Source of the DNA: Monocercomonoides exilis PA203
Taxonomy: Eukaryota > Protista > Preaxostyla
DNA: 64,000 bases
Direction: 5' to 3'
NCBI GenBank assembly: GCA_001643675.2
Contig: LSRY02000036.1
Coordinates: 434,001-498,000, forward strand
Of this stretch, positions 1-36,526 are shown in pieces. The notes beneath the pieces were generated by a model that was not told the DNA's origin, made no database searches, and saw nothing but the letters and a program-made list of their open reading frames with translations. Within the stretch, counting starts at the first letter, position 1, and each line of letters starts with the position of its first letter. The position numbers and the translations under genes were made by a program.

Positions 1-1908
1 CTTGAACGGCGCATCCGGCAAAACGTTGCTCATGTCCCCTGTCCCCTCCACATACACACGCGGCTGCTCGCTCATCGAGTACGACCGGTAGAACACCTTC
101 TCTGTGATGATCGTGCTCCACCCTTCTTCTGCCTCGATGTCCTTCCCCCCGCTCTGCGCCTCGTTCCCCGAAAACATCATGTAGTTCATGATCATCTGCG
201 GCCGCTCGCTCGCTTCATACACCTCCTGCTTCTGCCCTGCCGAAAAGAAGATCCCTCCCCCTCTCCCTTTCTTCGCCTCTCCCCCATTCACATCCGACGA
301 CTTCATCGTGAACTTCCCCTGCCCACCCACCGACTCCACAAACAGGCACCCTCCATTTGTCCCTGTCACCCCATCCTTAATCGTTGTCGATTCGCAAACA
401 AACGACCCCCTCTTCAGCACTTTCCCCAAATGCACACACCCTCCTTCTTCCTCTGCCCTCCCTCTCTTCACATCCGACGACCTCATCTCCAGCCGCGCCC
501 CTTCGCTCACCTCCCCAACATACACACACCCGCCCCGCCCGCTGCTGTTCGCGTCCTTGATCGTCGACGACACAATCTCCGATACCCCGCTCGCCACCTC
601 AATGTGCACCCCTCCTCCACACCCCGCCGACGCTTCCTTCACCTCGCTCGACTTCAGCACAAGCGTCCCGTTCATGCACACCCCACCCCCGCGCCCTCCC
701 GCACTGCACTTCTGCATCGATGACGACTTCACCACCACCGACCCTGCCCCGCTCCCGCCCACAAACAGCACCCCGCCATCCAACGACGCCGAGCACGTCT
801 TGAACGACGACGATGCAATCTCCACGCTCCCCGCTGACCCGTCAAGCGGCTCCACCGCAACCGCTCCCCCGCTCTGCTCTGCCGAGCACTCTTCAAACCG
901 GCACGACGAAATCGTCAGTGTCCCGCTGCTGACAAAATAGATCGCCCCTCCGCTTCCTGTGCTGTGCAGGTTTTTGAATGTGTTCGACCGGTACGTCGCC
1001 GATGCTCGCCCAAACACCCCCTCCGCCGACGCTGCTGCTGCAATTCCTGCTGCTCTCGCCTCCACCCCGCTCGTCTTGCAGCTGTCGAACGTGCACTCTT
1101 CCACCTCCACAGCCCCGCCCCCAAGCATCCCCATCACAACACATCCATACAGCCCGTTTTCCACTTCCTCAAACCTGCACCCATGCACCCTGCACGCTTG
1201 CGCCCCTCCCAGCGCCTTCTTTTCTTCTTCTTCTTCTTCTTCTTCTGCTGCTGCTGCTGCTGCCCATGCCCCCTCACGAATGCCCCGGAAGACACACCCC
1301 TCCAGCACCACTGCCTCTGCACAGCTGTCTGTCACAAGCGCCTCTCCTCTCGCTGTGCTCAGCCCCTCAAACTCCATCCCAAACATCCGCACCTCGCCCC
1401 CACGCCCCATCCCTTTCACCAGCGTCAGCACCCGCTCTGCCCCGCCCACTGGCACAAGCTGCACCTCCGACAGCTCAACAAACCCGCCACGGTTCACCAC
1501 TGCATGCACACGCCCAAAGTCCAGCGCCATCTCGCACTTCCGCATCCCCAGCCTGCTCTCCTCCCCCACCTCTGCAACGCTCGCCCACACGCTCCTCAGC
1601 CCCACCCAGCGAAGCGAAAGGCTCGACTTCTCCAGTTTGAACAGCTCTCCTTTCTCCCCGGCCTCTGCCGCCACCACTGCCCCGACGGACGCCTTTTCGC
1701 TTCCCTTCACCACCAGCTTGCGCATTGCTATCATGTTCGACCCCGTCTCGTACTCCCCGTCGGCCAGACGCACAACTTGCTCCAGCCCATTTGCTCCTTG
1801 CTCTGCCCGGCCCACACGCGCTGCCAGCGCCAGCGGCTGTGCTGGCCCTGCCCTCGCATCTGCTAGCACCATCAACGCTGCCATTGCACAGAATATCACA
1901 CAATTCAT
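1..1908 (-). CDS. Pmp-like/pectin-lyase-fold beta-helix surface protein, mirror copy (3' part beyond window edge)
   Basis: Reverse complement of the 5' ~1.9 kb of the 865-aa ORF 25690..28287; ATG at 1908; frame open to base 1. Confidence 0.85.
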   Translation of the reverse strand, partial: MNCVIFCAMAALMVLADARAGPAQPLALAARVGRAEQGANGLEQVVRLADGEYETGSNMIAMRKLVVKGSEKASVGAVVAAEAGEKGELFKLEKSSLSLRWVGLRSVWASVAEVGEESRLGMRKCEMALDFGRVHAVVNRGGFVELSEVQLVPVGGAERVLTLVKGMGRGGEVRMFGMEFEGLSTARGEALVTDSCAEAVVLEGCVFRGIREGAWAAAAAAEEEEEEEEKKALGGAQACRVHGCRFEEVENGLYGCVVMGMLGGGAVEVEECTFDSCKTSGVEARAAGIAAAASAEGVFGRASATYRSNTFKNLHSTGSGGAIYFVSSGTLTISSCRFEECSAEQSGGAVAVEPLDGSAGSVEIASSSFKTCSASLDGGVLFVGGSGAGSVVVKSSSMQKCSAGGRGGGVCMNGTLVLKSSEVKEASAGCGGGVHIEVASGVSEIVSSTIKDANSSGRGGCVYVGEVSEGARLEMRSSDVKRGRAEEEGGCVHLGKVLKRGSFVCESTTIKDGVTGTNGGCLFVESVGGQGKFTMKSSDVNGGEAKKGRGGGIFFSAGQKQEVYEASERPQMIMNYMMFSGNEAQSGGKDIEAEEGWSTIITEKVFYRSYSMSEQPRVYVEGTGDMSNVLPDAPFK

Positions 1909-2039
1909 TTGCTTTTATCAAAGATATTTCGAACTTGTTGGCCCATAAGCACTTGGATGAGAACAAATTCATTTCAATATTTGTTAAGGGAAATTGTGAA
2001 AAATCTTTCATCTCGATTATTTTGTTGGTGCATCCACTG

Positions 2040-2900
2040 ACAACGATTATTTTGTGTAGAAAGCGATGCATTAGAGAGATTGTACAATTTATGAAAAATG
2101 GATGATGTGCCAGTTGATATGAGAAACAGAACAATTTATAACAATAGAAAATGGCATTCAGCATGGATGGTGCACTCATTATTCAGAAAGCATAGGCAGA
2201 TGCGCCCCTCTTATCAATGCTTACCGTTAACCAAACTTTAATAAAAAAAACCAATATGGTCTTTGTTCAACAAACTCAGCATGAAGAGATGATTTCTGGA
2301 AAAGAAATGCGCGAGTTCAGTCGAAGAAAGGAGCGCTTCTGGTTTGCCATTTGGGATATCATCACTTTTCTGGCCACTTTTGTTGGAAGAGGTTGCATCA
2401 GATTCGGAATGCTTGAAGGAAAGCGACGAAGCTGAGAAAGATGAGGAAACGGCATTGCCAGCCATGAGGAGCATGCATTCATAGGAAGTGTGCTCGCTTC
2501 CTTTTCTTTTTCTTTCCTTTTATTTTTTTGTGTTTATTGTTGCGATAATAGTTGTTCTGAGCAGCCTGAGAGATCGAAATGAAGGCGAATCAGAAGCAAA
2601 ACAGAGCCAAATGCAGACTGAATCTTTTGCAACCAAACCAGACTCGCCTTTCGGCCTGCACATGCATTGGAGGCACGCAGAGTTGCGCAACGGAAGAAGC
2701 GCGAAGAGACTGAGACGTATTTTTCGAAGGAGTCAAAACAGGAAGGCAAAGAAAATTGAAAAGGAGAGAGCGCAGGACTGAAAAGGGACGAGGAAACACT
2801 CCAAGAGAATGGATTTGAAGATGGTAGAGCGAGAAGAAAAGAGGAGGATTGGGGCGTGTTGGCTGGACTTGTGATTGAGGAGTGGGAGACAGCAACTGCT
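2040..2900 (+). pseudogene. Decayed copy of the lineage-specific helical family (see 23013..24314); boundaries approximate
   Basis: Manual translation gives family-like fragments across frames: SMDGALIIQK/SIGRCAPLIN; LLLEEVASDSECLKESDEAEKDEETALPAMRSMHS*E followed by gtgtgc...ctgagcag (2488-2564) at the family's conserved intron position; then QTRLAFRPAH and ETYFSKESKQE (cf. LTQLAYQSAW, ELHFVRESRRE). Stops and frameshifts present. Confidence 0.55.
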
Positions 2901-3283
2901 AATTGGGAAGAGGAATTGCGAACAGCACATTCATCTGATGAGGATGCTTTTCAGCAGAGGAACAGGTGATGCGATGGGGTTTGTAGGAAATGGAACAGCT
3001 GGCTGGAATGGGAAGGAAGGGTGCGATTTCGCAATTTGTGAAAAACTGGCAAAGCACTCTGTTCATCTCTTTTCATTTTTCTTTCTTTTTTTTCACTTTG
3101 TTTCAAAGAATAGAAAATAAAAAATAAAAATAAAAATAATCAATGCTTCCAAAGAAGATTCAAGCAGCTGTTTGCTGAATCGTCAGCCAATCCAAAGAAA
3201 AGAAAAGAAATGAAACGAAAAGAAATGAAAAAAATTAAAAAAACATTATTATCCACCAACAAAATGAAATGCTTCTCGTTTCA

Positions 3284-4584
3284 TCAGACATTCACAAAAT
3301 AGTCTGATATGTTTTCTGATAAATGATTTCCGTATCTGCGATTCAGAAAACATAACACTCCATAAAAGCTTGCGATTGCATCTTCGTGCCCTTCTTCTTC
3401 CATCCTCTCAAACATCTCTCTCCCCATCCCTCTCCTTTTTGCTTCCTCTCTTTCATCCACCCCCCTTTTTCTCAGTTTCAGACAAATATTCAAAGTGATA
3501 TCCAAACAATAAATTGCTGTCTGGTCATCCAACCACAATCGGCGCATTTCAGAGGAAATCAGATCAACAGCTCCCCCTTCGCCAAGTAATCGACGCTGAC
3601 TGCTTCAAGGCATGCAACATTCGCCAGACGAGCAATGCCCTTCATGAATATTGCGCTCCCATCCCCTCTCGTTCCTTTGCACAATCCAACAACTGCACCA
3701 ATCAGCTCGCTGTATTCCTCGTTCTTCAGTCGGAAATATCCGAAAAAGTCACCAATAACTTTAATCCATCTCTCAATAACTTCTTCTTCATTTGTTTTCT
3801 TCAGCCTGTCTCCCGCTTTCTCCATGTGCATCCGCTTTCTCAGCTCTTCCAGTTCTCTCCTCGATTCTCTCACAAAATGAAGCTCCTCCACAATCACCTT
3901 TTCCATCTTTTCGTTTTTTCTCAGTCTGCTTATCAAAAACCCCCACGCAAGCTGATATCCATAAGATGACATGTTGCGATGCTCCTGATGATATCTCATC
4001 ATTTCCAATGTTTCATCCAAATACATTTCTTCATCCACCTCCTGTTTTTGTTTTGTTTGCGTGTTCGTCAACAAATATCAAAATCATTCAATATATATAT
4101 ATATAATAAAATTAGAAAGAAATAAAGAAAGAAAGAAAGAAAGGCACGCCTCAAACTCATCAACGTGGCCCAAGGCTGTGAAAGCCATATCCTTTTCCAT
4201 CAATGCTTCACAACTGCTATCTTTGTCTGAAGCAACTTTCAAAACGCAACGCAAACAAATTGAAAGCAATTCCTTTGGATATGCATAGCATAGCAAAAGA
4301 TAACACTCGCAAAGATGAATCAACAGCTTTTCGTTCTTTTCTTCCTTTCTCCCATCTTCTTTCACAATCATCTTCTCAAATCGTTTGCACAGCAAAGAAT
4401 CTTTAAAGTTAATCCACCACAAACCACACAATGCAGTGCGACGCCCAATGCCCATCAGCCAACGCACACAATCCTCCATCTTCATTTTCTCTTCTTCAAT
4501 CATTCTGTGCATTTCCTCGAACCGCTCTTCCTTGAAAACATCAAAAATATCGTCCGTGCTCATGTCTTTCAGCACTCTGTCCAT
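3284..4584 (-). CDS. Lineage-specific helical family protein, mirror copy with 1-nt frameshift near 3575; 5' end unresolved
   Basis: Mirror of 23013..24314; intron 4042-4149; G5 instead of G6 splits the last exon into ORFs 3559..4074 and 3284..3547. Confidence 0.75.
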
Positions 4585-12107: not shown

Positions 12108-12420
12108 AGCTGTCGGTGCGCGCCGGGGGAGTAGCAGCATCCGGGTGCGAGTGATTGCTGCTTTGTCTGTTTTGCACTCTTGTGCAGGCTCTTTTGCCTT
12201 GTGTGCTCGTGTGTCCTCCTCAGAGCGTGCCTGTGTGCTCATGCGATGCACGAAAGCAATGCTTCAGATGACTTTGCTCTGATTTGCCTGCCCAACTGGT
12301 TCTTCTTCTTGTTGTGTCTCTTTTTCTTTTTCTTTTTCTTTTCAATTCGTTTCTTTGCTGGCTGGAGTTGCTGCGGTGAGGCACAAATGTGTTATTTTCC
12401 AAAATGTTTGATTTGCCCAA

Positions 12421-12455
12421 ATTTTATTTTATTTTATTTTATTTTATTTTATTTT
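12421..12455 (+). repeat. (ATTTT)n microsatellite (mirror ~15134-15168)
   Basis: Directly visible tandem pentamer. Confidence 0.9.
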
Positions 12456-13337
12456 TACTTATTAAAAGATTAAAGCTATTTTTGATTTTCCGTTTTGTTC
12501 CAAGTTTTGAGTGTTATCACGTCGCAAAAGTCAAAATCAGAATAAGTCATAATTTTGCTTTGAGGCTTTTCCCTGCTTGGAGATAGAACAGAAAAGAGCA
12601 GATGAAAGAAGCCATGCAGATTGAGGGGTTCTGAACTGTGGTGCTTCAGTGCTCTCTTTTTTTGTTATTAATTGCGTGCTGAAATGTGGCACTATCTTGA
12701 AAATGGGCAACAAGGCGGAGCAGCAATATCCATTTGAATGAACAATAAATTATTGAAATGCATGAATGAAATATGGCTTATAAAATGACCATCCAAAACT
12801 GTTCATATTTGAAAAAATTGTTCCAAAAATCGAGCATTTTTGCTTTCAAATTCGAAAATATTTTATTGTTTGAAAATATTGAACATATGAGTGACACTTT
12901 TCGAAGTCAAATTTTTCTTTCAAAAATATCAATTACAACGAGTAAAAAACCCGAACATGGTAAAAAACCCGGACTTTTTATTAAAATTCATATATCTCGA
13001 CAAGTTTAAAAAATTAAATTATAATAATTCACACATTCATACATCAGTATATAACACATCTAGCCATATTGGAATTTTTATTTGTTGTGCTGTATTTATG
13101 AAGAAATAAATAATTTTTATTTTTGAAAATTTGACTTTTAATGAATTTTTCTATTTCAAAAAAACGATTCAGTTCATCTTTTATACATGAAACTTATTTT
13201 TTCTTTGTTGCAAACTGTTCGGGTTATTTTTCATTTTCTGCAATTTGCTCTTTACAACGGAATGAAAATCAATCATTTTTGAAAAATCACACTCAATGGG
13301 ATAACTTCAAAAATATTTTTTTCCAAACTCATAAGCA

Positions 13338-13596
13338 TACTTGTGAATTTAACACATGCATCAATAAATATGATAGTTATATAAAATGACTACATTTTTG
13401 AAATTTAAAATGATTCTATATTCATTTCATTAAATGCAATTTGGAAGAAAATTCAACAATAATGATCATAAAAAATTTTCAGTAATGAAAATAATCTTTG
13501 TTTATGAAATGAATATAGAATCATTTTAAATTTCAAAAATGTAGTCATTTTATATAACTATCATATTTATTGATGCATGTGTTAAATTCACAAGTA
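13338..13596. mobile_element. Foldback/MITE-like element B: 93-bp perfect inverted repeats (13338-13430 / 13504-13596, including terminal TA) around a 73-bp spacer
   Basis: TA-CTTGTGAATTTAACACATGC... and ...GCATGTGTTAAATTCACAAG-TA; non-coding and AT-rich. Confidence 0.7.
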
Positions 13597-13992
13597 CAGA
13601 TATCGCATAAAATACCGGACATCGCACAAAATACCGGACAAGATCGATATCTCAATAACCACAAGAAGAAAAATTCTGCTAAATTTCCTCTTAACATATT
13701 TCATCAATACAAACTCACGTGACATACAAGACTTTCAGGACAGCTTCGCTTGAGCCCAGAAAAAATTATTATTGAAATTTCGGAGAAATAGAATTTTGAG
13801 TTTCTCCGAGATTTCGATAAATATTTTTTCTGGGCTCAAGCGAAGCTGTCCTGAAAGTCTTGTATGTCACGTGAGTTTGTATTGATGAAATATGTTAAGA
13901 GGAAATTTAGCAGAATTTTTCTTCTTGTGGTTATTGAGATATCGATCTTGTCCGGTATTTTGTGCGATGTCCGGTATTTTATGCGATATCTG
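13597..13992. mobile_element. 396-bp foldback MITE (family A), Tc1/mariner-like TA flanks; its centre is the axis of the giant palindrome
   Basis: TA|CAGATATCGC...GCGATATCTG|TA; 170-bp arms; two 19-bp subterminal direct repeats ATCGCA(T/C)AAAATACCGGAC; 56-bp imperfectly symmetric spacer; homologous, same-length copy at 36131-36526. Confidence 0.88.
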
Positions 13993-14251
13993 TACTTGTG
14001 AATTTAACACATGCATCAATAAATATGATAGTTATATAAAATGACTACATTTTTGAAATTTAAAATGATTCTATATTCATTTCATAAACAAAGATTATTT
14101 TCATTACTGAAAATTTTTTATGATCATTATTGTTGAATTTTCTTCCAAATTGCATTTAATGAAATGAATATAGAATCATTTTAAATTTCAAAAATGTAGT
14201 CATTTTATATAACTATCATATTTATTGATGCATGTGTTAAATTCACAAGTA
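13993..14251. mobile_element. Mirror copy of foldback element B
   Basis: Reverse complement of 13338-13596. Confidence 0.7.
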
Positions 14252-15484
14252 TGCTTATGAGTTTGGAAAAAAATATTTTTGAAGTTATCCCATTGAGTGT
14301 GATTTTTCAAAAATGATTGATTTTCATTCCGTTGTAAAGAGCAAATTGCAGAAAATGAAAAATAACCCGAACAGTTTGCAACAAAGAAAAAATAAGTTTC
14401 ATGTATAAAAGATGAACTGAATCGTTTTTTTGAAATAGAAAAATTCATTAAAAGTCAAATTTTCAAAAATAAAAATTATTTATTTCTTCATAAATACAGC
14501 ACAACAAATAAAAATTCCAATATGGCTAGATGTGTTATATACTGATGTATGAATGTGTGAATTATTATAATTTAATTTTTTAAACTTGTCGAGATATATG
14601 AATTTTAATAAAAAGTCCGGGTTTTTTACCATGTTCGGGTTTTTTACTCGTTGTAATTGATATTTTTGAAAGAAAAATTTGACTTCGAAAAGTGTCACTC
14701 ATATGTTCAATATTTTCAAACAATAAAATATTTTCGAATTTGAAAGCAAAAATGCTCGATTTTTGGAACAATTTTTTCAAATATGAACAGTTTTGGATGG
14801 TCATTTTATAAGCCATATTTCATTCATGCATTTCAATAATTTATTGTTCATTCAAATGGATATTGCTGCTCCGCCTTGTTGCCCATTTTCAAGATAGTGC
14901 CACATTTCAGCACGCAATTAATAACAAAAAAAGAGAGCACTGAAGCACCACAGTTCAGAACCCCTCAATCTGCATGGCTTCTTTCATCTGCTCTTTTCTG
15001 TTCTATCTCCAAGCAGGGAAAAGCCTCAAAGCAAAATTATGACTTATTCTGATTTTGACTTTTGCGACGTGATAACACTCAAAACTTGGAACAAAACGGA
15101 AAATCAAAAATAGCTTTAATCTTTTAATAAGTAAAAATAAAATAAAATAAAATAAAATAAAATAAAATTTGGGCAAATCAAACATTTTGGAAAATAACAC
15201 ATTTGTGCCTCACCGCAGCAACTCCAGCCAGCAAAGAAACGAATTGAAAAGAAAAAAGAAAAAAGAAAAAAGAGACACAACAAGAAGAAGAACCAGTTGG
15301 GCAGGCAAATCAGAGCAAAGTCATCTGAAGCATTGCTTTCGTGCATCGCATGAGCACACAGGCACGCTCTGAGGAGGACACACGAGCACACAAGGCAAAA
15401 GAGCCTGCACAAGAGTGCAAAACAGACAAAGCAGCAATCACTCGCACCCGGATGCTGCTACTCCCCCGGCGCGCACCGACAGCT

Positions 15485-18400
15485 TCAAAAGAAATATGAC
15501 AAGAACTCTTCCGACTCCAGCGCGTCTTTCTCCACAATCACCTCCACACGCCCCGCCCTTTCTTCTTCTTCTGCTGCTGCTTCTTCTGCTTCTCCCTCCA
15601 TCCTTTCCATCCCTTCCATGTCGTCGTGCTTCTTGCTGCTGTGTGGAGATGCCGAATCCAGAGAAGCCGGCTGAAGAGACAGCAACATCTGTGCCTGTGC
15701 CTGTGCCTGTGTCTGCACAGCAGGCGCTCTGTTCTCCTCTTCCCTCAGCCGCCTCTCAAACTCCCCCCAAAACGAGCTCCCAACCCGCTGCGCCCAAACA
15801 AGCGTCGCCTCGTCAAACGTCGCATCCGACAGAACCTTCCCCAGCTGCTCTGCCCCGCCCGCCCGTCTGCCCCGCCCCTTCAGCTCCCGCTGGATCTGCT
15901 CCCGCTCCTTCCGCGGGATCGCAAAGTCTGCCCCCAGCCACACAAACACGCTCCTCTGCCCTGCCAATCGCATCGCCATACTACTGCTGCTGCTATTGTT
16001 GCTATGGTCATTGCCATTGCTATTGCTGCTGCCTGCCCCTCCCTTCCCTCGCTCCCTCCACCCCCAACCAGCGGCACCAGAACAAGACACCGCGACGACG
16101 ACAGCCCTTCGCTGTCAAACGAGTCGATCTCTGTCCACTTCGGATACTCAAACATCCGCGCCATCGGTGGATTTTCTCCTCCTCCTCCACTTCCTCCTCC
16201 ACTTCCTCTGCTCTCCATGTCCCAGGCAGATGCGACACTTCGCACTGACTGCTCATCTGCTCCTGAATAGCACAATGATGCTGCTGATGATGATGATGAG
16301 CTTGGCAGATTATGTTGTTGTTGATGTTGCATATCTTGGCTGGCCACTGCAGCCGTTGTGCTTTCCATCCGCAGCCCCATCGGCTTTCCCACACATTCCT
16401 CGTGCTGTGCAGACGGTGGCACACCCAACGACAGCACCAGACGCGACGGACACACCGATCTCGATGGCGGCGTCTGAAACACATCTGCCCTTCCGTCCTC
16501 CTCTTCCTCTTCCTCCTCCTCTTCCCTGCTCTCCTCGCTACCTCTTCCCCTCACACCTTCAACCCCATTCTCATTCTCATTCTCACTCCCATTTTCTCCC
16601 CTGCCCTCACCCTCGCCTTCGCCTTCACCCTCACCTTCACCCTCGCCCCCGCTCCTGCTCCTGCTGCCCCACCCGCCCTCGCCAAACATCCCCCTGTCTG
16701 TGTGTGCATTCCGCTCCTGCTCAAACTGCCGCTGTGCTTCTCCTCTCCGCAGCCTCGGCGACGATGAAGGAGGCGTCCCAAAAGCTGCAAAAGGTGCAAA
16801 TGATGCAAATGAGACAGCTCCCCTCCCAGACAAGCTTCCAGAGCATGCTGGCGACACTGCCCCTCCTCCTCCTGTTCCTGTTCCCAATCCCATCCCAAAC
16901 GACCCCAGCCGCCGGATCCGCCTCGTCAGCGCCGGCGTGCTTGCACCCGAGCAGACCGACAACTGCCCCGGCGATGGCGCTCCCGACGGCAAAGGCGACG
17001 CCTCGCCTGCACTGTCCAAAGGGAAGTGCTGCACAGAAGACGACTCGCTTGTGCTGAACAGCGACGATAGGAACGAACGCGACTCTGCCTCACTCAACGC
17101 TTTTCCTCTTTCCTCTTCTCTTTCCTCTTCTCTTTCTCTTCCTCCTGCTTTTGATTCTGTGTCTTCTACTGAATCATATTCTGTGTGAGTTGAGTGTGTT
17201 GAGCGAGATGAGAATGCCAGCTCTTCATGCTGCTCAGCTGTGCTTCTTCTCTCTCTCCATTCTGACTGCTTCCTGTCTCCCCCCTCCCTTCCTCCTGAGC
17301 TCCTTCTGCTTCCTCCTCTTTCTCCCTCTGCCCTCCTCTCACTCAGAAACTCCCCCTCTCCAATCTCTCTTCTTTCGCTCTTTCTCTTTCTCCTCCTCCT
17401 TCTCTTTCTTCTTCTTCTTCTCTTTTCACTCCTTTCACTCTTTTCACTCCTTTCACTCCTTCTGCTGCTATCAATGCTGTTGATGCTGTTGATGCTGTTG
17501 ATGCTCCCTGTCTGAAGTGAATGTGAATGTGAATGTTTGTGGAAGCACCCCAGCTGAGTCGCTCTTCCCATCTCAGATGTCGTTTCTCTTTCTCTTTCTC
17601 TTTCTGTCTGCCCAATTGATGATGATGAAGATAATGTTGATGATGAAGTTAAAGATGATGATGATGATAATGTTGATTGTAAATGTGAAGGTGAAGGTGA
17701 TTGTGATTGTGAATGAAGATGAAGATGGAGATTGGAAAGTGCAGGCACACAAGAATCACTCGGCGTTTGGGTTGAAGTGGATGGCGAGGTGGATGATGAA
17801 GTGGAACAATCAGACGATGATGATGGCAATGAAGTGGAATGGAATGATAGCAGAGGAACAGAACGAGGAATGTGAAGTGTCGGAAGTGCAGCAAATGCGA
17901 TTCCCTTTTTCTCTTCCCCCTTTCTCTCCTGCTGAAGTGGTGTCTCTGTGTTCTTTGCTGCTGATGCTGTTGATGATGATGATGTTGATGATGAATGAAG
18001 AGAGTGCTCAATCTGAGATGACGCCTGCGAATCTGCTGCAGATGAGTGCACAGAACACTCACAACACTCAGAACTCAATGAACTCAATGAACTTCTTTCC
18101 TCCTTCTCTTCTTTTTCTTCTTCTGTTTCTTCTTCTATCTCTTTGGCAGTGTCTGTATTTGTGCCTCTCCGCTCCTCTTTTGCCCTCTCTCGCTCCCTCT
18201 CTCCCATCTTCTGCAGCTGACTGCTCTTCCCATGCTCACAAGACACAACACTGTCTGCCAGCTCATCTGGCTGCCCCGAAGAAGACGAGGGAAGAAAAGA
18301 GAACGATGAGAACGATGAGAAGGACGAATCACACGCACAACAAGAATTTGAAGAAGAAATTGAAGAATGAGAAGACGATTCATCATTTCTCTCTCTTTCT

Positions 18401-21115
18401 TCTCTTTCACCCCCTCCCTTCATCCATAGCCTCCCCCCAACTGCCCACAACGCCTCTTCATCCAGCGCCGAGTCTTCCCCAATCACTTCGCTCGTGTCGC
18501 TCAGCCTCCCAAAATCAACAGTCGCCAGCTGACTTCTTTCTCTTTCTCTTTCTTCTCTTTCTCTTCCTCTTCCTCCATTCGGCTTCTCATCCTCAGATGC
18601 TCTTCGGAATGTCTTCAGCTCTTCATACTGATTGTTCTGTGTGGATGTTGTGAATGATGATGATGATGATGATGATGATGAAGTCGTTGATGAGGTTGTG
18701 TGTGTCTCCACCTGACGCCTCTGACTCACCTCGTTCAGACAACAATCCGGCTGCTCTTCCACCATCCTTTGCAGAAGCTTCCAGAACTCTCTTTCTTCTC
18801 TCCATTCAATCGACTCACACACTTTTTCTGCCTCACTTTTTCCTCTTCCTTCTCTTCCTTCTTCTTCTTCTTCTTTTCCTTCTTCTTCTCTTTCCCATCT
18901 GTTCCCCTGCCGCACACACACCACTTCCTCTCTCCCCTCCCTCCTCTCCCGCACCAGCGGAAACACCTCCGCCGGCAGCGAAAGCACTGCCTCTCGCTCA
19001 AACACCGTCTTCGTGTCGATCTTCACCCCGCCTTCCAACTCTGTCTCCTCCACCATCTCTGCCACCAGTGGCACCCGATGCTCTCCTTCTCCTTCCCCTT
19101 CTCTTCCTTCTTCCTCTTCTTCTTCCCTTTCTTCCCTTTCTTCTCTTCTTCTTCTTCTCTCTTCCCTCTCTCTTTCATTTCCCCTCTGCTCATTCTCTGC
19201 CACTTCCTCACTTTCCTCATCCCCTCCCAATCTCTCTCTATCTGTCCAAAGCACAGAGTCACTTCTCTCTCTTCCCCAAACACATTGTTCTTTCCCATCC
19301 TCATCTGCCTCCTCTTCTCTTCTTTCTCTTCGCTCACTCTGCTCTTTTCCCTCTTCTTCTTTCATCTCTTCTGCTTCTCTCCCTCCTTTCCCACAAAACT
19401 CCCCTTTTCTCGTCTTCCTCTTCCTCTCTTTCTCTCTTTCATGCCTCTCCTTCACTCGCTTCAGCTTCGCTTCAAGCTCCCCCAGACTCCTCGAAAACTT
19501 CTCACACTCTTTCTTCTCCCATCTCTCTTCTTCTTCTTCATTCTCACTCTCCTTTCCACTCTTCCCAAAAGGCAGCTGCTCCCCCAGCCACCGCCCATAC
19601 TCCACCCCTGCTGCCACATACTCCCTCTTCGCCTTCATCCCCACCCACACCCCAACCCCACACCTCCCAAACAGCACATACACAAACCGCCGGTCAAACG
19701 ACTTCTCGCTCAGCGGAACACCAACCCTGTGCGGTGTCACTGCTGCCACCCTCTCCATCTTCTCCTTCCTCTCCTTCCTCTCCTCCTTCCTCCTCCAATT
19801 ATCTTTTCTCCCTCTTCTCCCTCTTCTCCCCCTTCTTTCTCCTTCATCTTCTTCATCGTCTTCTTCCTCAGAATAATCTGAACTGCTTCCTTCTCCTTCC
19901 TCTTCATCCTCTTCCTCATCCTCTACCAACGCAAACTCTGATGGGTTGCTCTGTGCTCCCATCCTCCACAGCCCCCACATCACCCCCTTCTCCTTCTCAT
20001 TCTCCTTCTCATTCTCCTTCTCATTCTCATTCTCATTCTCTCTTTCGCTCTTCTCCCTCTCCCTCTTCTCCCACAACTGCCACAGCCCCTCCTGCTGCCG
20101 AGACTCCAGCTGAAGCTGCCGCACAAACCCCTCGTTCGGCCGGATCACCCCGCGCTCCCGCCGGCTCCACGACAGCACACACGACAGCGACGCATTCAGC
20201 GCATACATCAGATACCCCAGACACACAGACGCCGACCGCGACACCCCCTGGTGGCAGTGCACAAAAAACACCGCCTCCTTCCCTTCCCCGTCTCTTCCCC
20301 CGTCCATGTCCCCCCTGCTCCTCCTCTGCCTGTCCAACCCCATCCCACTCTCTTTTTTCTCCCTCCCCTCTCTTCCCCGTTTCTCATGCTCCCCATCCTC
20401 CAATGCTGCAATCTTCCTCCTCTTCCTCCTCATCTTCCTCGTCTTCCTCCTCCTCCACTCCCGCCGCTCTGCCTCGATCGCAAAGATCGCATACGGCAGC
20501 AGCGAGATCACATCCTGCTCTGCGTCGTCGCTCAGATTCACCTGCATGTACCGGAACTCCCCAGGGAAATACGCCGGGCACACCCCTGCTGCACAGTTCA
20601 GGATGTGCGTCACCCCCCTTCCCATGCAGCAGCTCCCGGTCCGCCGCCACCTTCCGAGACCCCACATACACATACGGCAGCACCCCCGAGCACTGCCCCT
20701 CGAAGTACTGCAGCTTCTCCGCCCGCGCCGCCTCCTCGTCCACTGACACCGTCCGCCTCGCCAGAATCTTCGAGATGTCCAGCATCAGCGACTGCTTCCC
20801 GTGCACCGCCCCTCCCGCTGCCTCTCCTCTTCCTCCCTCCCCTGCCCCAATTCCAACCCCAATTCCAACCCCAATCCCAACCCCAGCCCCAACCATTCCT
20901 TCAACATTCCTCTTTTCCTTTTCCCTGCTCTCTCCCAGCCCTTCCCCTCCATCTGCCTCTCCCCTCATCGCTGCTCCCCGCAACACCCTCTGCTCCTCGC
21001 CTTCTCCTGCACCCTCTCCACACTCGCTTCCGTGCCCTCCTCTTCCATCCAGTTCAGCACAATTTGTATTTTCTTCCTGCTGCGCTCTTTTCTGCTTTTC
21101 GTCGTCCGTTTCCAT
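15485..21115 (-). CDS. MKP1: MKP1-like dual-specificity phosphatase, second copy (only two frameshifts, ~20615 and ~16045)
   Basis: ORFs 20384..21115, 15880..20673 (1597 aa, contains HCHQGVSRS) and 15485..16090 join into one reading; total span 5631 nt is divisible by 3. Confidence 0.82.
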
Positions 21116-23012
21116 TCCTTTCTGTTTCGATATTTTCTGCGTCTTGCCTGTGTTTCCGCCCCCTCCGTCCAGTTCCTGAACGGATATTCAATCCTCTTTC
21201 TTTCCCAACAATTATATAATGGGCCGCTCAAAACTCCTTCCTCATAAAAACACTCTTCGAAAAGTTAACGAATATTCACCATCCAAATATACAGTATTAT
21301 TAATTTTATTTTTGCAGCAAGCACACAATGATACAAAATCAATAAAACATTAATTATTGAGAATTATTCTGAGATGAGAAAATGAAATATGATTGAAAAA
21401 CACTCAAAAAAGACAATCTTTCTCTCCTTTTTTTTTTATCACAAAAAAAATTAATATCGGTATCAATTGAAAAAATAGAAGCAAATTGATTGTGGTGAAA
21501 AGCAAAGAAAAAGTCGTCATTTGCCATCAAACGCACAGAAAAGACAAATTGCACTTCAAATCATCGTTCTCCTCACTCAACCTTCGAGCACAAATTCTGA
21601 TTAACCTTTTGAAGCAGACACACTCCACAGGCATCTGCTGCTCCTGAACGATCCAATTTCAGTTGAGAGAACAATAGATGAACGAAGTGGAGATGTCTTT
21701 CAACAGGCACCGAAGCCAATGAACACGAAAAAAGTGCAACATGAAATGGCCTCTGTGTTTTCCAAAGGGACTTTGCTTCTTCATTCCTTCCCTTCTCTCA
21801 AAAACACCTCTTCTGTCTCCGTCTGCCTTGCCTGCCCGCCACGCCAATTCCACCCAGCCCAAACAACACCTGCTTCTTCATCTTCAACATTGCTTCCCAA
21901 CCAACCCCCACAAAAAGCACATGTCTTCCCCGTTCTGTCCAGCTGGCACATACCTTTCACAACCCCGTGGCTGCTGCTCTCTGATCTGCCAATCGTCTTC
22001 AAATGCCTCTTTCTGCCTTTGGCGTTGTTATTCAATTCCTCTTTTGTTGTCTCTTTGCAGATTGCTGTCTTTCATGATTTATAAGACAGCACACACAGAA
22101 GGAGAGACAGAAAACATGGCTGAGGATCTTTCTGCAAAACGAATTCAAAACGAATTCAAGACGAACTGAGAGAGTTCTCCTTTTCTGCCCCAATCCTTCT
22201 CCTTCTCCACTGCTTCCTTTCCCCAATGAACACAAAAAACATTTCTGCATCATTTGGGAGCAGCTCCTATGCCCATTTCATCGTCAAGGAAATCCACTTC
22301 CCATGCGCCAAACACAACAGCCATCAAGCTGCAAATGCTCTTGGTGTGTTTTCTTCAATATATAAAAAGGGAACAAGCCTGATGATGCGTTTGCAAATAA
22401 AAAGGAATGAAATGAAGAAGAAGGGGAAAAAAGCGTGAAAGTCATATCGCAGACCTCGTGTTTGAAAGAGGAATACTGGTTTTCAGACATTTATTTCTTT
22501 CAGCTGAACCAATCTGGTTGTTTGTCATCCTTTCCTCCTCCTCCAAGTTCCATTCTCGTGTGCTGAAATGTAGATAAGGCACAAATACACAAACTGCAAA
22601 GAGTTCAGAAAAACAACAAAAAAAATCAAAAGAAAACCATCATTGTTTCTGTTTCTGTTTGAATTATTATTTGTTTGATCAAAAAAAATCAAAAAAACAC
22701 TTGTGTTTGCTCTGTTTTTCTTTCGTTTTGCTCCCCATCAACAATGTTTGTGTTTTCTGATTGTTCTGCCGACGCAATGCTTTGCCCTGCTGATGGAACG
22801 TGTTTTTCGCAATCAGAATGGATGAGCGCGTCAACAGAGCGAATGCAGATGGAATCGAGGAGATTTCTCCAAAGAATAGGTTTGGGGGTTTGTTTATTTT
22901 TGCTGTGTTTTTTTCGGGCCACGTCTTTTGGTGATTTGCACAATTCTGCGAAGAGCTGTATAATGAGCTGGGGCAATGCTCAGAGGCGGAGCAAAAACAG
23001 AAGACAGAAGAA

Positions 23013-24314
23013 ATGGACAGAGTGCTGAAAGACATGAGCACGGACGATATTTTTGATGTTTTCAAGGAAGAGCGGTTCGAGGAAATGCACAGAATGATTG
23101 AAGAAGAGAAAATGAAGATGGAGGATTGTGTGCGTTGGCTGATGGGCATTGGGCGTCGCACTGCATTGTGTGGTTTGTGGTGGATTAACTTTAAAGATTC
23201 TTTGCTGTGCAAACGATTTGAGAAGATGATTGTGAAAGAAGATGGGAGAAAGGAAGAAAAGAACGAAAAGCTGTTGATTCATCTTTGCGAGTGTTATCTT
23301 TTGCTATGCTATGCATATCCAAAGGAATTGCTTTCAATTTGTTTGCGTTGCGTTTTGAAAGTTGCTTCAGACAAAGATAGCAGTTGTGAAGCATTGATGG
23401 AAAAGGATATGGCTTTCACAGCCTTGGGCCACGTTGATGAGTTTGAGGCGTGCCTTTCTTTCTTTCTTTCTTTATTTCTTTCTAATTTTATTATATATAT
23501 ATATATTGAATGATTTTGATATTTGTTGACGAACACGCAAACAAAACAAAAACAGGAGGTGGATGAAGAAATGTATTTGGATGAAACATTGGAAATGATG
23601 AGATATCATCAGGAGCATCGCAACATGTCATCTTATGGATATCAGCTTGCGTGGGGGTTTTTGATAAGCAGACTGAGAAAAAACGAAAAGATGGAAAAGG
23701 TGATTGTGGAGGAGCTTCATTTTGTGAGAGAATCGAGGAGAGAACTGGAAGAGCTGAGAAAGCGGATGCACATGGAGAAAGCGGGAGACAGGCTGAAGAA
23801 AACAAATGAAGAAGAAGTTATTGAGAGATGGATTAAAGTTATTGGTGACTTTTTCGGATATTTCCGACTGAAGAACGAGGAATACAGCGAGCTGATTGGT
23901 GCAGTTGTTGGATTGTGCAAAGGAACGAGAGGGGATGGGAGCGCAATATTCATGAAGGGCATTGCTCGTCTGGCGAATGTTGCATGCCTTGAAGCAGTCA
24001 GCGTCGATTACTTGGCGAAGGGGGGAGCTGTTGATCTGATTTCCTCTGAAATGCGCCGATTGTGGTTGGATGACCAGACAGCAATTTATTGTTTGGATAT
24101 CACTTTGAATATTTGTCTGAAACTGAGAAAAAGGGGGGTGGATGAAAGAGAGGAAGCAAAAAGGAGAGGGATGGGGAGAGAGATGTTTGAGAGGATGGAA
24201 GAAGAAGGGCACGAAGATGCAATCGCAAGCTTTTATGGAGTGTTATGTTTTCTGAATCGCAGATACGGAAATCATTTATCAGAAAACATATCAGACTATT
24301 TTGTGAATGTCTGA
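23013..24314 (+). CDS. Lineage-specific helical family protein (at least two exons; intron 23448-23555); frame open upstream to ~22930, true start unresolved
   Basis: Motifs EKNEKLLIHLCECYLLL, ICLRCVLKVA, YHQEHRN..YQLAW, ELHFVRE, FERMEEEGHED are shared with 33841..35157 and 48902..50194. Confidence 0.8.
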
Positions 24315-24699
24315 TGAAACGAGAAGCATTTCATTTTGTTGGTGGATAATAATGTTTTTTTTATTTTTTTCATTTCTTTTCGTTTCATTTCTTTTCTTTT
24401 CTTTGGATTGGCTGACGATTCAGCAAACAGCTGCTTGAATCTTCTTTGGAAGCATTGATTATTTTTATTTTTATTTTTTATTTTCTATTCTTTGAAACAA
24501 AGTGAAAAAAAAGAAAGAAAAATGAAAAGAGATGAACAGAGTGCTTTGCCAGTTTTTCACAAATTGCGAAATCGCACCCTTCCTTCCCATTCCAGCCAGC
24601 TGTTCCATTTCCTACAAACCCCATCGCATCACCTGTTCCTCTGCTGAAAAGCATCCTCATCAGATGAATGTGCTGTTCGCAATTCCTCTTCCCAATTAG

Positions 24700-25560
24700 C
24701 AGTTGCTGTCTCCCACTCCTCAATCACAAGTCCAGCCAACACGCCCCAATCCTCCTCTTTTCTTCTCGCTCTACCATCTTCAAATCCATTCTCTTGGAGT
24801 GTTTCCTCGTCCCTTTTCAGTCCTGCGCTCTCTCCTTTTCAATTTTCTTTGCCTTCCTGTTTTGACTCCTTCGAAAAATACGTCTCAGTCTCTTCGCGCT
24901 TCTTCCGTTGCGCAACTCTGCGTGCCTCCAATGCATGTGCAGGCCGAAAGGCGAGTCTGGTTTGGTTGCAAAAGATTCAGTCTGCATTTGGCTCTGTTTT
25001 GCTTCTGATTCGCCTTCATTTCGATCTCTCAGGCTGCTCAGAACAACTATTATCGCAACAATAAACACAAAAAAATAAAAGGAAAGAAAAAGAAAAGGAA
25101 GCGAGCACACTTCCTATGAATGCATGCTCCTCATGGCTGGCAATGCCGTTTCCTCATCTTTCTCAGCTTCGTCGCTTTCCTTCAAGCATTCCGAATCTGA
25201 TGCAACCTCTTCCAACAAAAGTGGCCAGAAAAGTGATGATATCCCAAATGGCAAACCAGAAGCGCTCCTTTCTTCGACTGAACTCGCGCATTTCTTTTCC
25301 AGAAATCATCTCTTCATGCTGAGTTTGTTGAACAAAGACCATATTGGTTTTTTTTATTAAAGTTTGGTTAACGGTAAGCATTGATAAGAGGGGCGCATCT
25401 GCCTATGCCTTCTGAATAATGAGTGCACCATCCATGCTGAATGCCATTTTCTATTGTTATAAGTTGTTCTGTTTCTTATATCAACTGGCACATCATCCAT
25501 TTTTCATAAATTGTACAATCTCTCTAGTGCATAACTTCCTGAACAAAATAATCGTTGTCA
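24700..25560 (-). pseudogene. Mirror copy of the decayed family pseudogene (approximate)
   Basis: Reverse complement of ~2040-2900, with several substitutions at 25405-25545. Confidence 0.5.
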
Positions 25561-25689
25561 GTGGATGCACCAACAAAATAATCGAGATGAAAGATTTTTC
25601 ACAATTTCCCTTAACAAATATTGAAATGAATTTGTTCTCATCCAAGTGCTTATGGGCCAACAAGTTCGAAATATCTTTGATAAAAGCAA

Positions 25690-28287
25690 ATGAATTGTGT
25701 GATATTCTGTGCAATGGCAGCGTTGATGGTGCTAGCAGATGCGAGGGCAGGGCCAGCACAGCCGCTGGCGCTGGCAGCGCGTGTGGGCCGGGCAGAGCAA
25801 GGAGCAAATGGGCTGGAGCAAGTTGTGCGTCTGGCCGACGGGGAGTACGAGACGGGGTCGAACATGATAGCAATGCGCAAGCTGGTGGTGAAGGGAAGCG
25901 AAAAGGCGTCCGTCGGGGCAGTGGTGGCGGCAGAGGCCGGGGAGAAAGGAGAGCTGTTCAAACTGGAGAAGTCGAGCCTTTCGCTTCGCTGGGTGGGGCT
26001 GAGGAGCGTGTGGGCGAGCGTTGCAGAGGTGGGGGAGGAGAGCAGGCTGGGGATGCGGAAGTGCGAGATGGCGCTGGACTTTGGGCGTGTGCATGCAGTG
26101 GTGAACCGTGGCGGGTTTGTTGAGCTGTCGGAGGTGCAGCTTGTGCCAGTGGGCGGGGCAGAGCGGGTGCTGACGCTGGTGAAAGGGATGGGGCGTGGGG
26201 GCGAGGTGCGGATGTTTGGGATGGAGTTTGAGGGGCTGAGCACAGCGAGAGGAGAGGCGCTTGTGACAGACAGCTGTGCAGAGGCAGTGGTGCTGGAGGG
26301 GTGTGTCTTCCGGGGCATTCGTGAGGGGGCATGGGCAGCAGCAGCAGAAGAAGAAGAAGAAGAAGAAGAAGAAGAAGAAAAGAAGGCGCTGGGAGGGGCG
26401 CAAGCGTGCAGGGTGCATGGGTGCAGGTTTGAGGAAGTGGAAAACGGGCTGTATGGATGTGTTGTGATGGGGATGCTTGGGGGCGGGGCTGTGGAGGTGG
26501 AAGAGTGCACGTTCGACAGCTGCAAGACGAGCGGGGTGGAGGCGAGAGCAGCAGGAATTGCAGCAGCAGCGTCGGCGGAGGGGGTGTTTGGGCGAGCATC
26601 GGCGACGTACCGGTCGAACACATTCAAAAACCTGCACAGCACAGGAAGCGGAGGGGCGATCTATTTTGTCAGCAGCGGGACACTGACGATTTCGTCGTGC
26701 CGGTTTGAAGAGTGCTCGGCAGAGCAGAGCGGGGGAGCGGTTGCGGTGGAGCCGCTTGACGGGTCAGCGGGGAGCGTGGAGATTGCATCGTCGTCGTTCA
26801 AGACGTGCTCGGCGTCGTTGGATGGCGGGGTGCTGTTTGTGGGCGGGAGCGGGGCAGGGTCGGTGGTGGTGAAGTCGTCATCGATGCAGAAGTGCAGTGC
26901 GGGAGGGCGCGGGGGTGGGGTGTGCATGAACGGGACGCTTGTGCTGAAGTCGAGCGAGGTGAAGGAAGCGTCGGCGGGGTGTGGAGGAGGGGTGCACATT
27001 GAGGTGGCGAGCGGGGTATCGGAGATTGTGTCGTCGACGATCAAGGACGCGAACAGCAGCGGGCGGGGCGGGTGTGTGTATGTTGGGGAGGTGAGCGAAG
27101 GGGCGCGGCTGGAGATGAGGTCGTCGGATGTGAAGAGAGGGAGGGCAGAGGAAGAAGGAGGGTGTGTGCATTTGGGGAAAGTGCTGAAGAGGGGGTCGTT
27201 TGTTTGCGAATCGACAACGATTAAGGATGGGGTGACAGGGACAAATGGAGGGTGCCTGTTTGTGGAGTCGGTGGGTGGGCAGGGGAAGTTCACGATGAAG
27301 TCGTCGGATGTGAATGGGGGAGAGGCGAAGAAAGGGAGAGGGGGAGGGATCTTCTTTTCGGCAGGGCAGAAGCAGGAGGTGTATGAAGCGAGCGAGCGGC
27401 CGCAGATGATCATGAACTACATGATGTTTTCGGGGAACGAGGCGCAGAGCGGGGGGAAGGACATCGAGGCAGAAGAAGGGTGGAGCACGATCATCACAGA
27501 GAAGGTGTTCTACCGGTCGTACTCGATGAGCGAGCAGCCGCGTGTGTATGTGGAGGGGACAGGGGACATGAGCAACGTTTTGCCGGATGCGCCGTTCAAG
27601 AAGGTGATCATAGCGGCAGTTGTGGCATTCGCAGTGGTGGCAGCGGTTGTGGCGGTGGGTGTTGTGCTGTGTGCGTGCTTCTGTCCGTGCTGCGCGTGCT
27701 GTGCGTGCTGCCCGTGCTGCCGGCAATACAAGCTGCGGAAGGAGAAGGAGGAGAAGAGGAGGACGCGGCTGATGGTGAATGGGAGCAGCTTTGCGCTGCC
27801 AGCTGAGCCGCGGTCGACGAGAGACGAGAACGAGAGAGGGATGGGGCAGATGGTTGTTGCAGTGGACACAGCACAGAACGATCAGAAGTTTGGAGCAGAG
27901 CCTAACGGAAGCAGCGTGCAGACAGTTCAGATGGCACAGATGGCACCAGCAGGGATGGCGCCGTATCCGGTGCTGCCGCAGCAAGGGCAGGTGCCAGTGG
28001 CAGTGGGAGTGCAGTTTCAGGCGCCTCCGATGCAGCCGCCACCACAACAAGGGGTGGTGTATGGACCAGTGGGAAATGTGGCAGCTGGGTACATGCCAGT
28101 CTATCAGGGCACACAAGCACAGTATGTGATTGCGCAGCAGCCGTATCCACAGCCACCTCAACCACCTCAACCATCTCAGCCACCTCAGACACCTCAGACA
28201 CCTCAGACACAGCCAGCCATTTCACTGCCGAGCCAGTCGGATGTGCCTCAGAAGGAGATCGACAGCGACTTGCCTGTGAAAGTGTAG
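25690..28287 (+). CDS. Type-I membrane protein: signal peptide, GGA(I/V)/GGC beta-helix repeats (Pmp/pectin-lyase-like), TM helix, Cys string, Pro/Gln-rich tail; 865 aa, intronless
   Basis: MNCVIFCAMAALMVLADA; repeats GSGGAIYF, SGGAVAV, GGGVCM, GGCVYV, GGGIFF, FSGNEA; TM VIIAAVVAFAVVAAVVAVGVVL; CACFCPCCACCACCPCC; strongly GC3-rich codons. Confidence 0.88.
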   Translation: MNCVIFCAMAALMVLADARAGPAQPLALAARVGRAEQGANGLEQVVRLADGEYETGSNMIAMRKLVVKGSEKASVGAVVAAEAGEKGELFKLEKSSLSLRWVGLRSVWASVAEVGEESRLGMRKCEMALDFGRVHAVVNRGGFVELSEVQLVPVGGAERVLTLVKGMGRGGEVRMFGMEFEGLSTARGEALVTDSCAEAVVLEGCVFRGIREGAWAAAAEEEEEEEEEEEKKALGGAQACRVHGCRFEEVENGLYGCVVMGMLGGGAVEVEECTFDSCKTSGVEARAAGIAAAASAEGVFGRASATYRSNTFKNLHSTGSGGAIYFVSSGTLTISSCRFEECSAEQSGGAVAVEPLDGSAGSVEIASSSFKTCSASLDGGVLFVGGSGAGSVVVKSSSMQKCSAGGRGGGVCMNGTLVLKSSEVKEASAGCGGGVHIEVASGVSEIVSSTIKDANSSGRGGCVYVGEVSEGARLEMRSSDVKRGRAEEEGGCVHLGKVLKRGSFVCESTTIKDGVTGTNGGCLFVESVGGQGKFTMKSSDVNGGEAKKGRGGGIFFSAGQKQEVYEASERPQMIMNYMMFSGNEAQSGGKDIEAEEGWSTIITEKVFYRSYSMSEQPRVYVEGTGDMSNVLPDAPFKKVIIAAVVAFAVVAAVVAVGVVLCACFCPCCACCACCPCCRQYKLRKEKEEKRRTRLMVNGSSFALPAEPRSTRDENERGMGQMVVAVDTAQNDQKFGAEPNGSSVQTVQMAQMAPAGMAPYPVLPQQGQVPVAVGVQFQAPPMQPPPQQGVVYGPVGNVAAGYMPVYQGTQAQYVIAQQPYPQPPQPPQPSQPPQTPQTPQTQPAISLPSQSDVPQKEIDSDLPVKV

Positions 28288-36130: not shown

Positions 36131-36526
36131 CAGATATCGCAAAAAATACCGGACATCACTCAAAATACCGGACAAGATCGTTTTCTCAATAACTGCAAGA
36201 GGAATAATTCTGACAATTTTCCTCAAAACACATCTCATCAATACAAACTCACGTGACAAACAAGACTTTCATGACTTCCTCGTTTATGCTCGGAAAATAA
36301 TTATTAAAAATTCTTTGGGAAACTCAAAATCCACTTTCTCCGAAATTTTAAAAATTGATATTTCTGAGCAAAAACGAGGAAGTCATGAAAGTCTTGTTTG
36401 TCACGTGAGTTTGTATTGATGAGATGTATTTTGAGGAAAATTGTCAGAATTATTCCTCTTGCAGTTATTGAGAAAACGATCTTGTCCAATATTTTGTGCG
36501 ATGTCAGGTATTTTATGCGATATCTG
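36131..36526. mobile_element. Second 396-bp foldback MITE (family A), inserted in a (TAA)n tract with TA flanks; core inverted relative to the 13597 copy
   Basis: aataataaTA|CAGATATCGC...GCGATATCTG|TAataataat; ~165-bp arms with few mismatches; core gggaaactcaaaatccactttctccgaaattt matches the reverse complement of the 13767-13822 spacer; flanks are unique and non-palindromic. Confidence 0.9.

Follow-up and report, generated by a model that had tools for sequence, protein, structure and literature searches.

The locus

The stretch of DNA analysed here (the window) covers 64,000 nucleotides of the genome of Monocercomonoides exilis PA203, positions 434,001 to 498,000 of contig LSRY02000036.1 (G000:C32:434001-498000), in an assembly of 82,301,135 bp and 101 contigs. 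Its left part is a giant palindrome, and at the centre of the palindrome sits a foldback miniature inverted-repeat transposable element (MITE). The arms carry a phosphatase-like gene, a gene for a Pmp-like membrane protein and a gene of a very large family. How far does the palindrome extend? Which of its arms came first? And how does a transposon of some 400 bp come to lie exactly on the axis? The features on which the argument depends are the following, in window coordinates.

1..13594, no strand: in-window part of the left arm, read here as parental; starts at C32:432467; 99.3% mirror identity with the right arm
12934..13594, minus strand: arm and 250-bp core of an element of a second foldback family, FB-1066; abuts the MITE; 100% mirror at 13995-14655
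13595..13994, no strand: complete foldback MITE at the palindrome centre, 396 bp (13597-13992), with TA on each side and the ends CAGATATCGCA...TGCGATATCTG
13789..13800, no strand: single-copy spacer of 12 nt, the hairpin loop (inverted-repeat scan; fold with 10-nt loop)
13995..14655, plus strand: core and arm of FB-1066, mirror copy; 100% mirror of 12934-13594
13995..29154, no strand: right arm, read here as derived (BLAST alignment, boundary comparison)
29062..29154, minus strand: cut copy of the terminal exon of the left-flank gene, last 31 codons and stop; ends at the novel junction
29154..29155, no strand: outer junction of the right arm with the unique right flank, without target-site duplication (TSD) and without MITE or FB-1066 remnant
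36131..36526, no strand: independent MITE copy of the same family, with non-mirrored flanks

An inverted-repeat scan of the window gave a chain of mirror segments, 1-13788 against 13801-27600, interrupted by small indels only and leaving 12 nt between the innermost arms. A first reading made from the sequence alone (the sequence-only reading) had described a palindrome at 1-27600 with arms of at least 13.8 kb. The palindrome is real, but its arms measure 15.3 kb, and its apparent end at 27600 arises because the window edge cuts the left arm: the next 1,554 bp to the right of 27600 match the reverse strand of the sequence immediately left of the window. With 20 kb of left flank added to the window before BLAST, C32:432467-447788 and 463154-447801 (window -1533..13788 and 29154..13801) fall into a single alignment of 15,373 columns with 99.32% identity, 34 mismatches and 28 gap openings. 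The left arm is 15,322 bp long and the right arm 15,354 bp; the entire palindrome is 30,688 bp and extends 1,533 bp to the left of the window edge. Homology between the arms ends abruptly at both outer boundaries. The contig (1,065,637 bp) extends 432 kb to the left of the palindrome and ~600 kb to the right; the window holds 34.8 kb of unique sequence beyond the right junction, and the first 446 bp of this flank occur only once in the genome. The sequence-only reading had named a left arm that stops at a contig end among the findings that would speak against a real palindrome. Since the palindrome is internal and has unique flanks on both sides, this is not what is found.

The MITE on the axis

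The axis lies at window position 13794.5, inside the loop of the 396-bp element and between its two flanking TA dinucleotides, just where the sequence-only reading had put it. The mirror symmetry of the host DNA begins directly outside the MITE ends. When folded as single-stranded DNA (ssDNA), the axis MITE forms a ~190-bp stem that is interrupted by one small internal loop and closed by a loop of 10 nt (free energy -227 kcal/mol, z = -45). The same reading had assigned the axis to a 56-bp asymmetric spacer; the axis does fall within the hairpin loop, but most of this supposed spacer is paired in the fold. The relative at 36131-36526, for which it had reported ordinary flanks, indeed shows no mirrored flanks in the inverted-repeat scan.

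How large is the family to which these two copies belong? A search of the genome with a 15-nt internal motif, allowing at most one mismatch, returned 391 forward and 375 reverse matches (none with the reversed control), which implies a family of ~390 copies. Among 20 sampled copies whose ends are both intact, 17 are flanked by TA on either side, and the modal length is 396 bp. By its sequence the axis element is best classed as a Stowaway-like (TA-target) MITE. It resembles Stowaway-like or Tc1-mariner-type MITEs in its TA TSD, its short terminal inverted repeats (TIRs), its length of ~400 bp, its lack of coding sequence and its hundreds of copies. Unlike them, the entire element is one long hairpin, not the ends only, and its two arms co-vary within copies.

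This covariation was scored in 51 copies against their consensus (L009-L027, L032-L062 and the window copy at 36131-36526). Complementary changes in both arms were found at 609 positions, compared with ~59 expected if the arms had changed independently. Some copies carry 36-40 paired positions off consensus and still have near-perfect arms, and in copy L032, which shares only 73% identity with the axis copy, the two arms still match each other at 98%. Subfamily structure would add to the covariation; the symmetric changes would nevertheless have to come from one arm being copied onto the other. We infer that this matching of MITE arms may come from the same kind of strand turn-around that is proposed below for the large palindromes. 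At C32 the arms of the axis MITE are nearly perfectly matched and are therefore uninformative on the age of the MITE relative to that of the palindrome arms.

Arm polarity and an overwritten element

The outer ends of the palindrome give it a direction. A gene's final 31 codons, with the stop, make up the outermost 93 bp of each arm. Going outward on the left, the frame stays open for another 80 codons of unique flank, so that the terminal exon of this plus-strand gene counts 111 codons. On the right, the frame extends for a few codons only, into sequence 114 bp 3' of the stop codon of an unrelated open reading frame (ORF) of 1,061 aa on the same strand. The left arm is parental, and 29154/29155 is the new junction, because the terminal exon is whole on the left side only. 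A comparison of the boundaries found no TSD at the outer ends.

A second line of evidence comes from the DNA next to the MITE. The 660 bp adjoining it on each side belong to the foldback family FB-1066, whose members are ~1.0-1.07 kb long; at least 40 matches to it were scored. Its forward and reverse matches overlap by ~250 bp at more than 20 other loci, so that the canonical element reads arm'-core-arm with a single core (one such copy lies at G000:C31:996193-997258). The C32 locus departs from this pattern: the two matches do not overlap but border directly on the MITE, each side has a core, and of the original far arm (~405 bp) nothing is left. Where did this arm go? Local alignment gave no sign of a MITE remnant where the right flank begins (score 14, against a shuffle mean of 14.3), and no remnant of FB-1066 was found elsewhere in the window or in the 20 kb leftward; therefore at least the far FB-1066 arm was lost. 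In the simplest history the MITE would have entered an FB-1066 element at its core/arm border, and everything to the right of the MITE would then have been replaced by a mirror copy of the left side.

Other MITE copies also lie in or next to foldback elements. Copy L022 is within 60 bp of an FB-1066-like segment, and nested insertion into hairpin-forming elements may be favoured. At L017:1335-2069 (G000:C14:476963-477697) a 396-bp MITE sits exactly between the outer 175-bp ends of another foldback family, which is fully palindromic and 1,012 bp long, with one variant of 1.53 kb (family copies L063-L066). This composite could be either a small-scale snap-back product that later became mobile as a unit or the outcome of a hairpin-guided symmetric deletion. 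We considered whether FB-1066 is the same 1,012-bp family and rejected this, as the two are unrelated.

A second palindrome centred on the same MITE family

Is the C32 palindrome a single accident? We surveyed 50 MITE copies with ~1.5 kb of flank per side, 19 of them the best query matches and 31 taken in contig order. Two are at the centre of a multi-kb palindrome, one at C32 and one at C37; the remaining 48 have ordinary, unrelated flanks. The second copy, C37:337818-338217, centres an 8.1-kb palindrome (C37:333969-342081) with an arm identity of 98.4%, which is internal to a contig of 978,991 bp and has its own repeat-unit differences between the arms. Both C37 arms contain a common mosaic of a 2.36-kb Harbinger-type element, another repeat and 210 bp of unique DNA adjoining the MITE, and the palindrome is therefore a segmental mirror duplication and not two separate insertions. 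The C37 MITE also gives an indication of age that the C32 copy does not. Outside the loop region its arms differ at ~11 of 170 positions (~6.5%), whereas the flanks differ at ~10 of 3,849 (~0.26%). The MITE arms are thus ~25 times more diverged than the flanks, and therefore the MITE predates the duplication. By our own estimate, the chance of a 400-bp element lying exactly on a palindrome axis would be of the order of 1e-5 per copy.

Two side observations belong to this survey. The 2.36-kb element in the C37 arms includes an ORF for a DDE_Tnp_4 (PIF/Harbinger-type) transposase (L030:7724-8341, G000:C37), and at least five other copies of the element exist at 93-97% identity. The MITE loci L014 (G000:C35:33024-36423) and L015 (G000:C67:3286-6683) have near-identical self-alignment patterns, flanks included, and one of them lies ~5 kb from its contig start, which suggests a segmental duplicate or overlapping contig ends.

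How the palindrome may have formed

As read from the assembled sequence, the C32 palindrome is probably a recent interstitial inverted duplication of a 15.3-kb gene block, turned around at a MITE that was already there. The assembly itself shows how the palindrome is built, which arm is parental, that a flanking element was overwritten and that a second family copy also has a palindrome around it; the order of events and the enzymology we infer from these. To start with, a Stowaway-like MITE of 396 bp would have entered an older FB-1066 element where core and arm meet, at a site right of what is now the left arm. In the step that we prefer for what followed, a replicative template switch, the nascent strand would have folded back on the ~190-bp MITE stem and copied itself outward. 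A less likely alternative is the filling-in of a break at the MITE that had been resected or capped by a hairpin. After 15.3 kb, synthesis would have rejoined the chromosome at the new junction, 29154/29155. The copy would thereby have been cut inside the 3' exon of the left-flank gene, and at least the far FB-1066 arm, of 405 bp, would have been removed. The product would read A - L - MITE - L' - B, where A and B are the left and right flanks and L and L' the two arms, and would hold second copies of the phosphatase-like gene, the gene for the Pmp-like membrane protein and the family gene.

The product is interstitial, with neither side of the chromosome lost, and we therefore favour replication with two template switches. 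The sequence does not separate the replicative route from break capping or from a U-type exchange. A pathway of breakage, hairpin capping, a dicentric chromosome and rejoining seems less likely, and so does U-type exchange. The latter would be seeded by the MITE as well: recombination between sister chromatids, in which the left MITE arm of one pairs with the right MITE arm of the other, would yield a mirror chromosome that was later broken and rejoined. Such exchanges are familiar from isodicentric Y chromosomes and from the fusion of nearby inverted repeats in yeast. They would produce the same centre, with the whole MITE and its loop kept, and would fit all the anatomical observations; the ~170 bp of perfectly matched MITE arms are a possible substrate for homologous pairing. 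However, the intermediate is dicentric or acentric, an interstitial product demands additional breakage, rejoining and recapture of the distal part, and a two-switch replicative event needs fewer steps. We therefore regard U-type exchange as rather unlikely.

Several points weigh against the interpretation as a MITE-seeded inverted duplication, whichever route produced it. Many of the arm differences are 1-bp homopolymer indels that resemble unpolished errors, and Canu was run with very permissive correction (corMinCoverage 0; PMC8767320). The second junction has no informative microhomology, which makes the route of resolution a guess. With 48 of the 50 surveyed MITE copies lacking a palindrome, any one copy seldom gives rise to such an event. 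Finally, the central TA is itself palindromic, and the centre alone cannot tell a MITE that came first from one that came later. The two points on read errors and assembly lead to the question of whether the palindrome exists in the chromosome at all, and the last one to the order of events; both are taken up below.

Differences between the arms

The assembly of M. exilis PA203 (82.3 Mbp, 101 contigs) was made from Oxford Nanopore (ONT) reads with Canu 1.8, Nanopolish and ten rounds of Pilon (PMC8767320), and its authors state that multi-copy parts are less well polished (PMC8767320). The words 'palindrom', 'MITE' and 'inverted' do not occur in the text of that paper (PMC8767320). Across the inner 13.8 kb of the C32 arms the differences are mostly homopolymer indels of 1 to 2 bp. 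Nine of these split the left copy of a 1,597-aa ORF over a 4.8-kb stretch that is without a substitution, while the right copy is intact. Such differences fit unpolished nanopore error in duplicated sequence, and if the homopolymer differences are polishing error the true arm identity is therefore above 99.3%. In the C37 palindrome, nearly all 1-bp indels consist of a single A that the left arm lacks. It seems that in each palindrome polishing has missed one arm, where gene models are therefore unreliable.

Not all the differences are of this kind. The C32 arms also differ by repeat-unit changes of 3, 6, 12 and 18 bp, and ~19 substitutions fall in their outer 1.5 kb. Another nine substitutions lie within 134 bp (2056-2189 against 25409-25542), just upstream of the start codon of the membrane protein; this cluster may reflect diverged regulation or a short tract converted from a third sequence.

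Could the palindrome be an artefact of library or assembly? Here fold-back or hairpin-capped ONT reads at the MITE would have been built into the Canu contig, and only one copy of the arm would be real. The combination of ONT reads, Canu 1.8 with corMinCoverage 0 and poorly polished multi-copy parts (PMC8767320) gives this proposal some ground, as do the homopolymer indels of the inner arms, and a molecule hairpin-capped at the MITE would read exactly L-MITE-L'. But a fold-back read stops at the outer end of L'. It cannot make a seamless junction with the 34.8 kb of unique right flank and the ~600 kb of contig that follow, and there is no dispersed repeat at the outer junction. Fold-back chimeric reads are recognised by a position at a contig end and by arms identical except for random read errors; the C32 palindrome has neither. 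Repeat-unit changes of 18, 12, 6 and 3 bp together with clustered substitutions are impossible from the two strands of one molecule. The C37 palindrome, too, is contig-internal and has repeat-unit differences of its own.

A further point against the artefact comes from the membrane protein, whose two arm copies are two distinct annotated proteins, P0001 and P0004. The third member of their cluster, P0005 (634 aa), has EukProt as its only source; at the single earlier coding difference that it spans it has the left-arm variant, and it breaks off 5 codons short of the point where the outer, more diverged 1.5 kb show their first coding difference. We assume that P0005 is a model of the earlier 454-based gene set. 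A collapsed two-copy repeat could break at just this place in a short-read assembly, which is only suggestive. No separate C-terminal fragments of the membrane protein, which would have revealed the variants of both arms in other gene sets, were found in the protein database. Taken together, an artefact with one real copy is distinctly unlikely.

Did the palindrome precede the MITE?

A different order of events would have the palindrome form first and the MITE insert later into its central TA, its transposase preferring cruciform tips or palindrome centres. If the MITE and one TA are removed, the centre is a perfect spacer-less palindrome around TA, and hence a legal target. The family copies in or beside other foldbacks (L017, L022 and the FB-1066 at this locus) might likewise reflect a taste for hairpin-forming DNA. 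But without its MITE the centre would consist of an FB-1066 element that has its core twice, which none of the copies scored elsewhere shows, and at C37 the excess divergence of the MITE arms over their flanks makes the MITE look older. The proposal also does not say how two multi-kb palindromes without a spacer arose, and the MITE family would have had to hit the exact centre on two occasions. We know of no TA-target element that targets palindrome centres exactly. This order of events is very unlikely.

Barely credible is the idea that the entire 30.7 kb is one giant foldback transposon with 15-kb TIRs and captured genes: foldback elements with matched arms (0.4-1.5 kb) abound in the genome, but the outer ends here have no TSD and are not repeated elsewhere, each tested arm part has two copies only, and the left end lies inside a host gene exon that continues outside. 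Two further candidates were rejected. An inverted triplication by origin-dependent inverted-repeat amplification (ODIRA) does not agree with the presence of only two copies of the outer and the inner arm and with an outer junction that lacks an inverted repeat. A misjoin of two haplotypes would not fit the flanks: beyond the right arm comes flank B, and this has no homology with flank A.

Genes carried by the arms

The arms contain the following coding features.

15880..20673, minus strand: 1,597-aa ORF with a dual-specificity phosphatase domain (PF00782, E = 6e-15), right copy
~6920-11710, plus strand: phosphatase-like ORF, left copy, split by the nine homopolymer indels relative to the right copy
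25714..28287, plus strand: membrane protein P0004, 857 aa, right copy, with beta-helix/Pmp-like repeats, a transmembrane (TM) segment and a Cys-rich tail
~1885 to past the window start, minus strand: membrane protein P0001, 850 aa, left copy, a distinct annotated protein
23013..24314, plus strand: two neighbouring ORFs (166 and 263 aa), taken as the exons of one gene; the 263-aa ORF is a member of a very large family
~3283-4584, minus strand: the same two-ORF family gene, left copy, with a 1-bp C-run difference at 3572

The best outside matches of the membrane protein carry Pmp repeats (PF02415) and are only 26% identical to it. At residues ~630-690 of P0004 (window 27601-27760) a TM stretch precedes a dense cluster of Cys, CACFCPCCACCACCPCC, a putative site of multiple acylation. 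The 263-aa ORF of the family gene (23523-24311, plus strand) has no match in Pfam and at least 145 scored paralogues among 1,781 first-look candidates, dispersed and ~40% identical; the family is specific to this genome. Two of its paralogues, G000:C80:640673-641440 (plus) and 649182-649949 (minus), stand in opposite orientation 8.5 kb apart and have identical scores, which suggests another inverted duplication. In a search for hairpin-processing genes, an Mre11 domain was found in the genome; the SAE2 Pfam model gave zero matches here and likewise zero in the control genomes, so that its zero here carries no weight.

The C32 event duplicated host genes. Of the two verified palindromes it is the only one to do so, C37 carrying transposon debris. 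The sequence-only reading had proposed both that the MITE nucleates inverted duplications and that this could drive the expansion of gene families. The first proposal gains from arm polarity, the overwritten FB-1066, the C37 palindrome and the count of 2 in 50 copies. The second is not supported: the family paralogues are old, dispersed and ~40% identical, and they give no evidence that the mechanism built the family.

Relation to known systems and significance

How does an inverted duplication seeded by a MITE compare with what has been described elsewhere? The palindromic ribosomal DNA (rDNA) of Tetrahymena is a fold-back inverted duplication. In the gross chromosomal rearrangements (GCRs) of yeast, ssDNA hairpins give rise to foldback inversions that are stabilised by secondary rearrangements (PMC7467729), and human inverted duplications retain a single-copy spacer bounded by short inverted sequences (PMC3907307). 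The C32 palindrome is like these in having a short single-copy spacer that corresponds to the hairpin loop and is bounded by pre-existing inverted repeats, one parental and one derived arm, and a secondary junction that stabilises the product. It is unlike them in three respects. The inverted repeat is a whole MITE and not a chance sequence of a few to tens of bp; the product is interstitial, without terminal deletion or new telomere; and it is the assembled state of a natural protist genome, recurring at a second copy of the family.

ODIRA, which makes inverted triplications with inverted repeats at both junctions (PMC10766183), shares with our proposal the switching of templates at short inverted repeats at the fork and the interstitial gain of inverted copies. 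It differs in that C32 has two copies only and an outer junction without an inverted repeat. Amplification or rearrangement driven by inverted repeats is also known for inverted Alu pairs in yeast models, for the SIDER repeats of Leishmania and for the long repeats behind Candida isochromosomes. Widely spaced inverted repeats in yeast likewise drive rearrangements (PMC10164571). Common to all of these and to C32 are dispersed repeats, derived from transposable elements, that act as fragile, hairpin-forming seeds of mirror gene duplications. The known cases, unlike C32, involve two separate repeat copies, or extrachromosomal or whole-arm products; at C32 a single self-complementary MITE appears to be enough, and the result is a compact chromosomal palindrome. 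The class of mechanism is thus known. What appears new, and well supported by the assembled sequences, is the MITE as the seed and its recurrence within one genome.

Much is known of hairpin-seeded inverted duplication from engineered yeast, tumours and patients. There are few natural cases, present as the assembled state of a genome, with a seed that can be named. At C32 the state before the event can be partly rebuilt from the canonical structure of FB-1066, which the MITE had entered. There is also a practical side, as unpolished homopolymer errors in one arm of each palindrome break gene models. If reads confirm the palindromes, M. exilis would offer a natural series of events of different age and a route by which MITEs duplicate whole genes, and part of the repeat fraction that the genome paper left unclassified would be explained. 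A wider proposal, possible but doubtful on present observations, is that 'snap-back' is an ongoing process throughout this genome, in which hairpin transposons match their own arms, build composite foldbacks and occasionally make palindromes that duplicate genes. If this is true, snap-back would be a main builder of the very large, mostly unclassified repeat fraction of the M. exilis genome.

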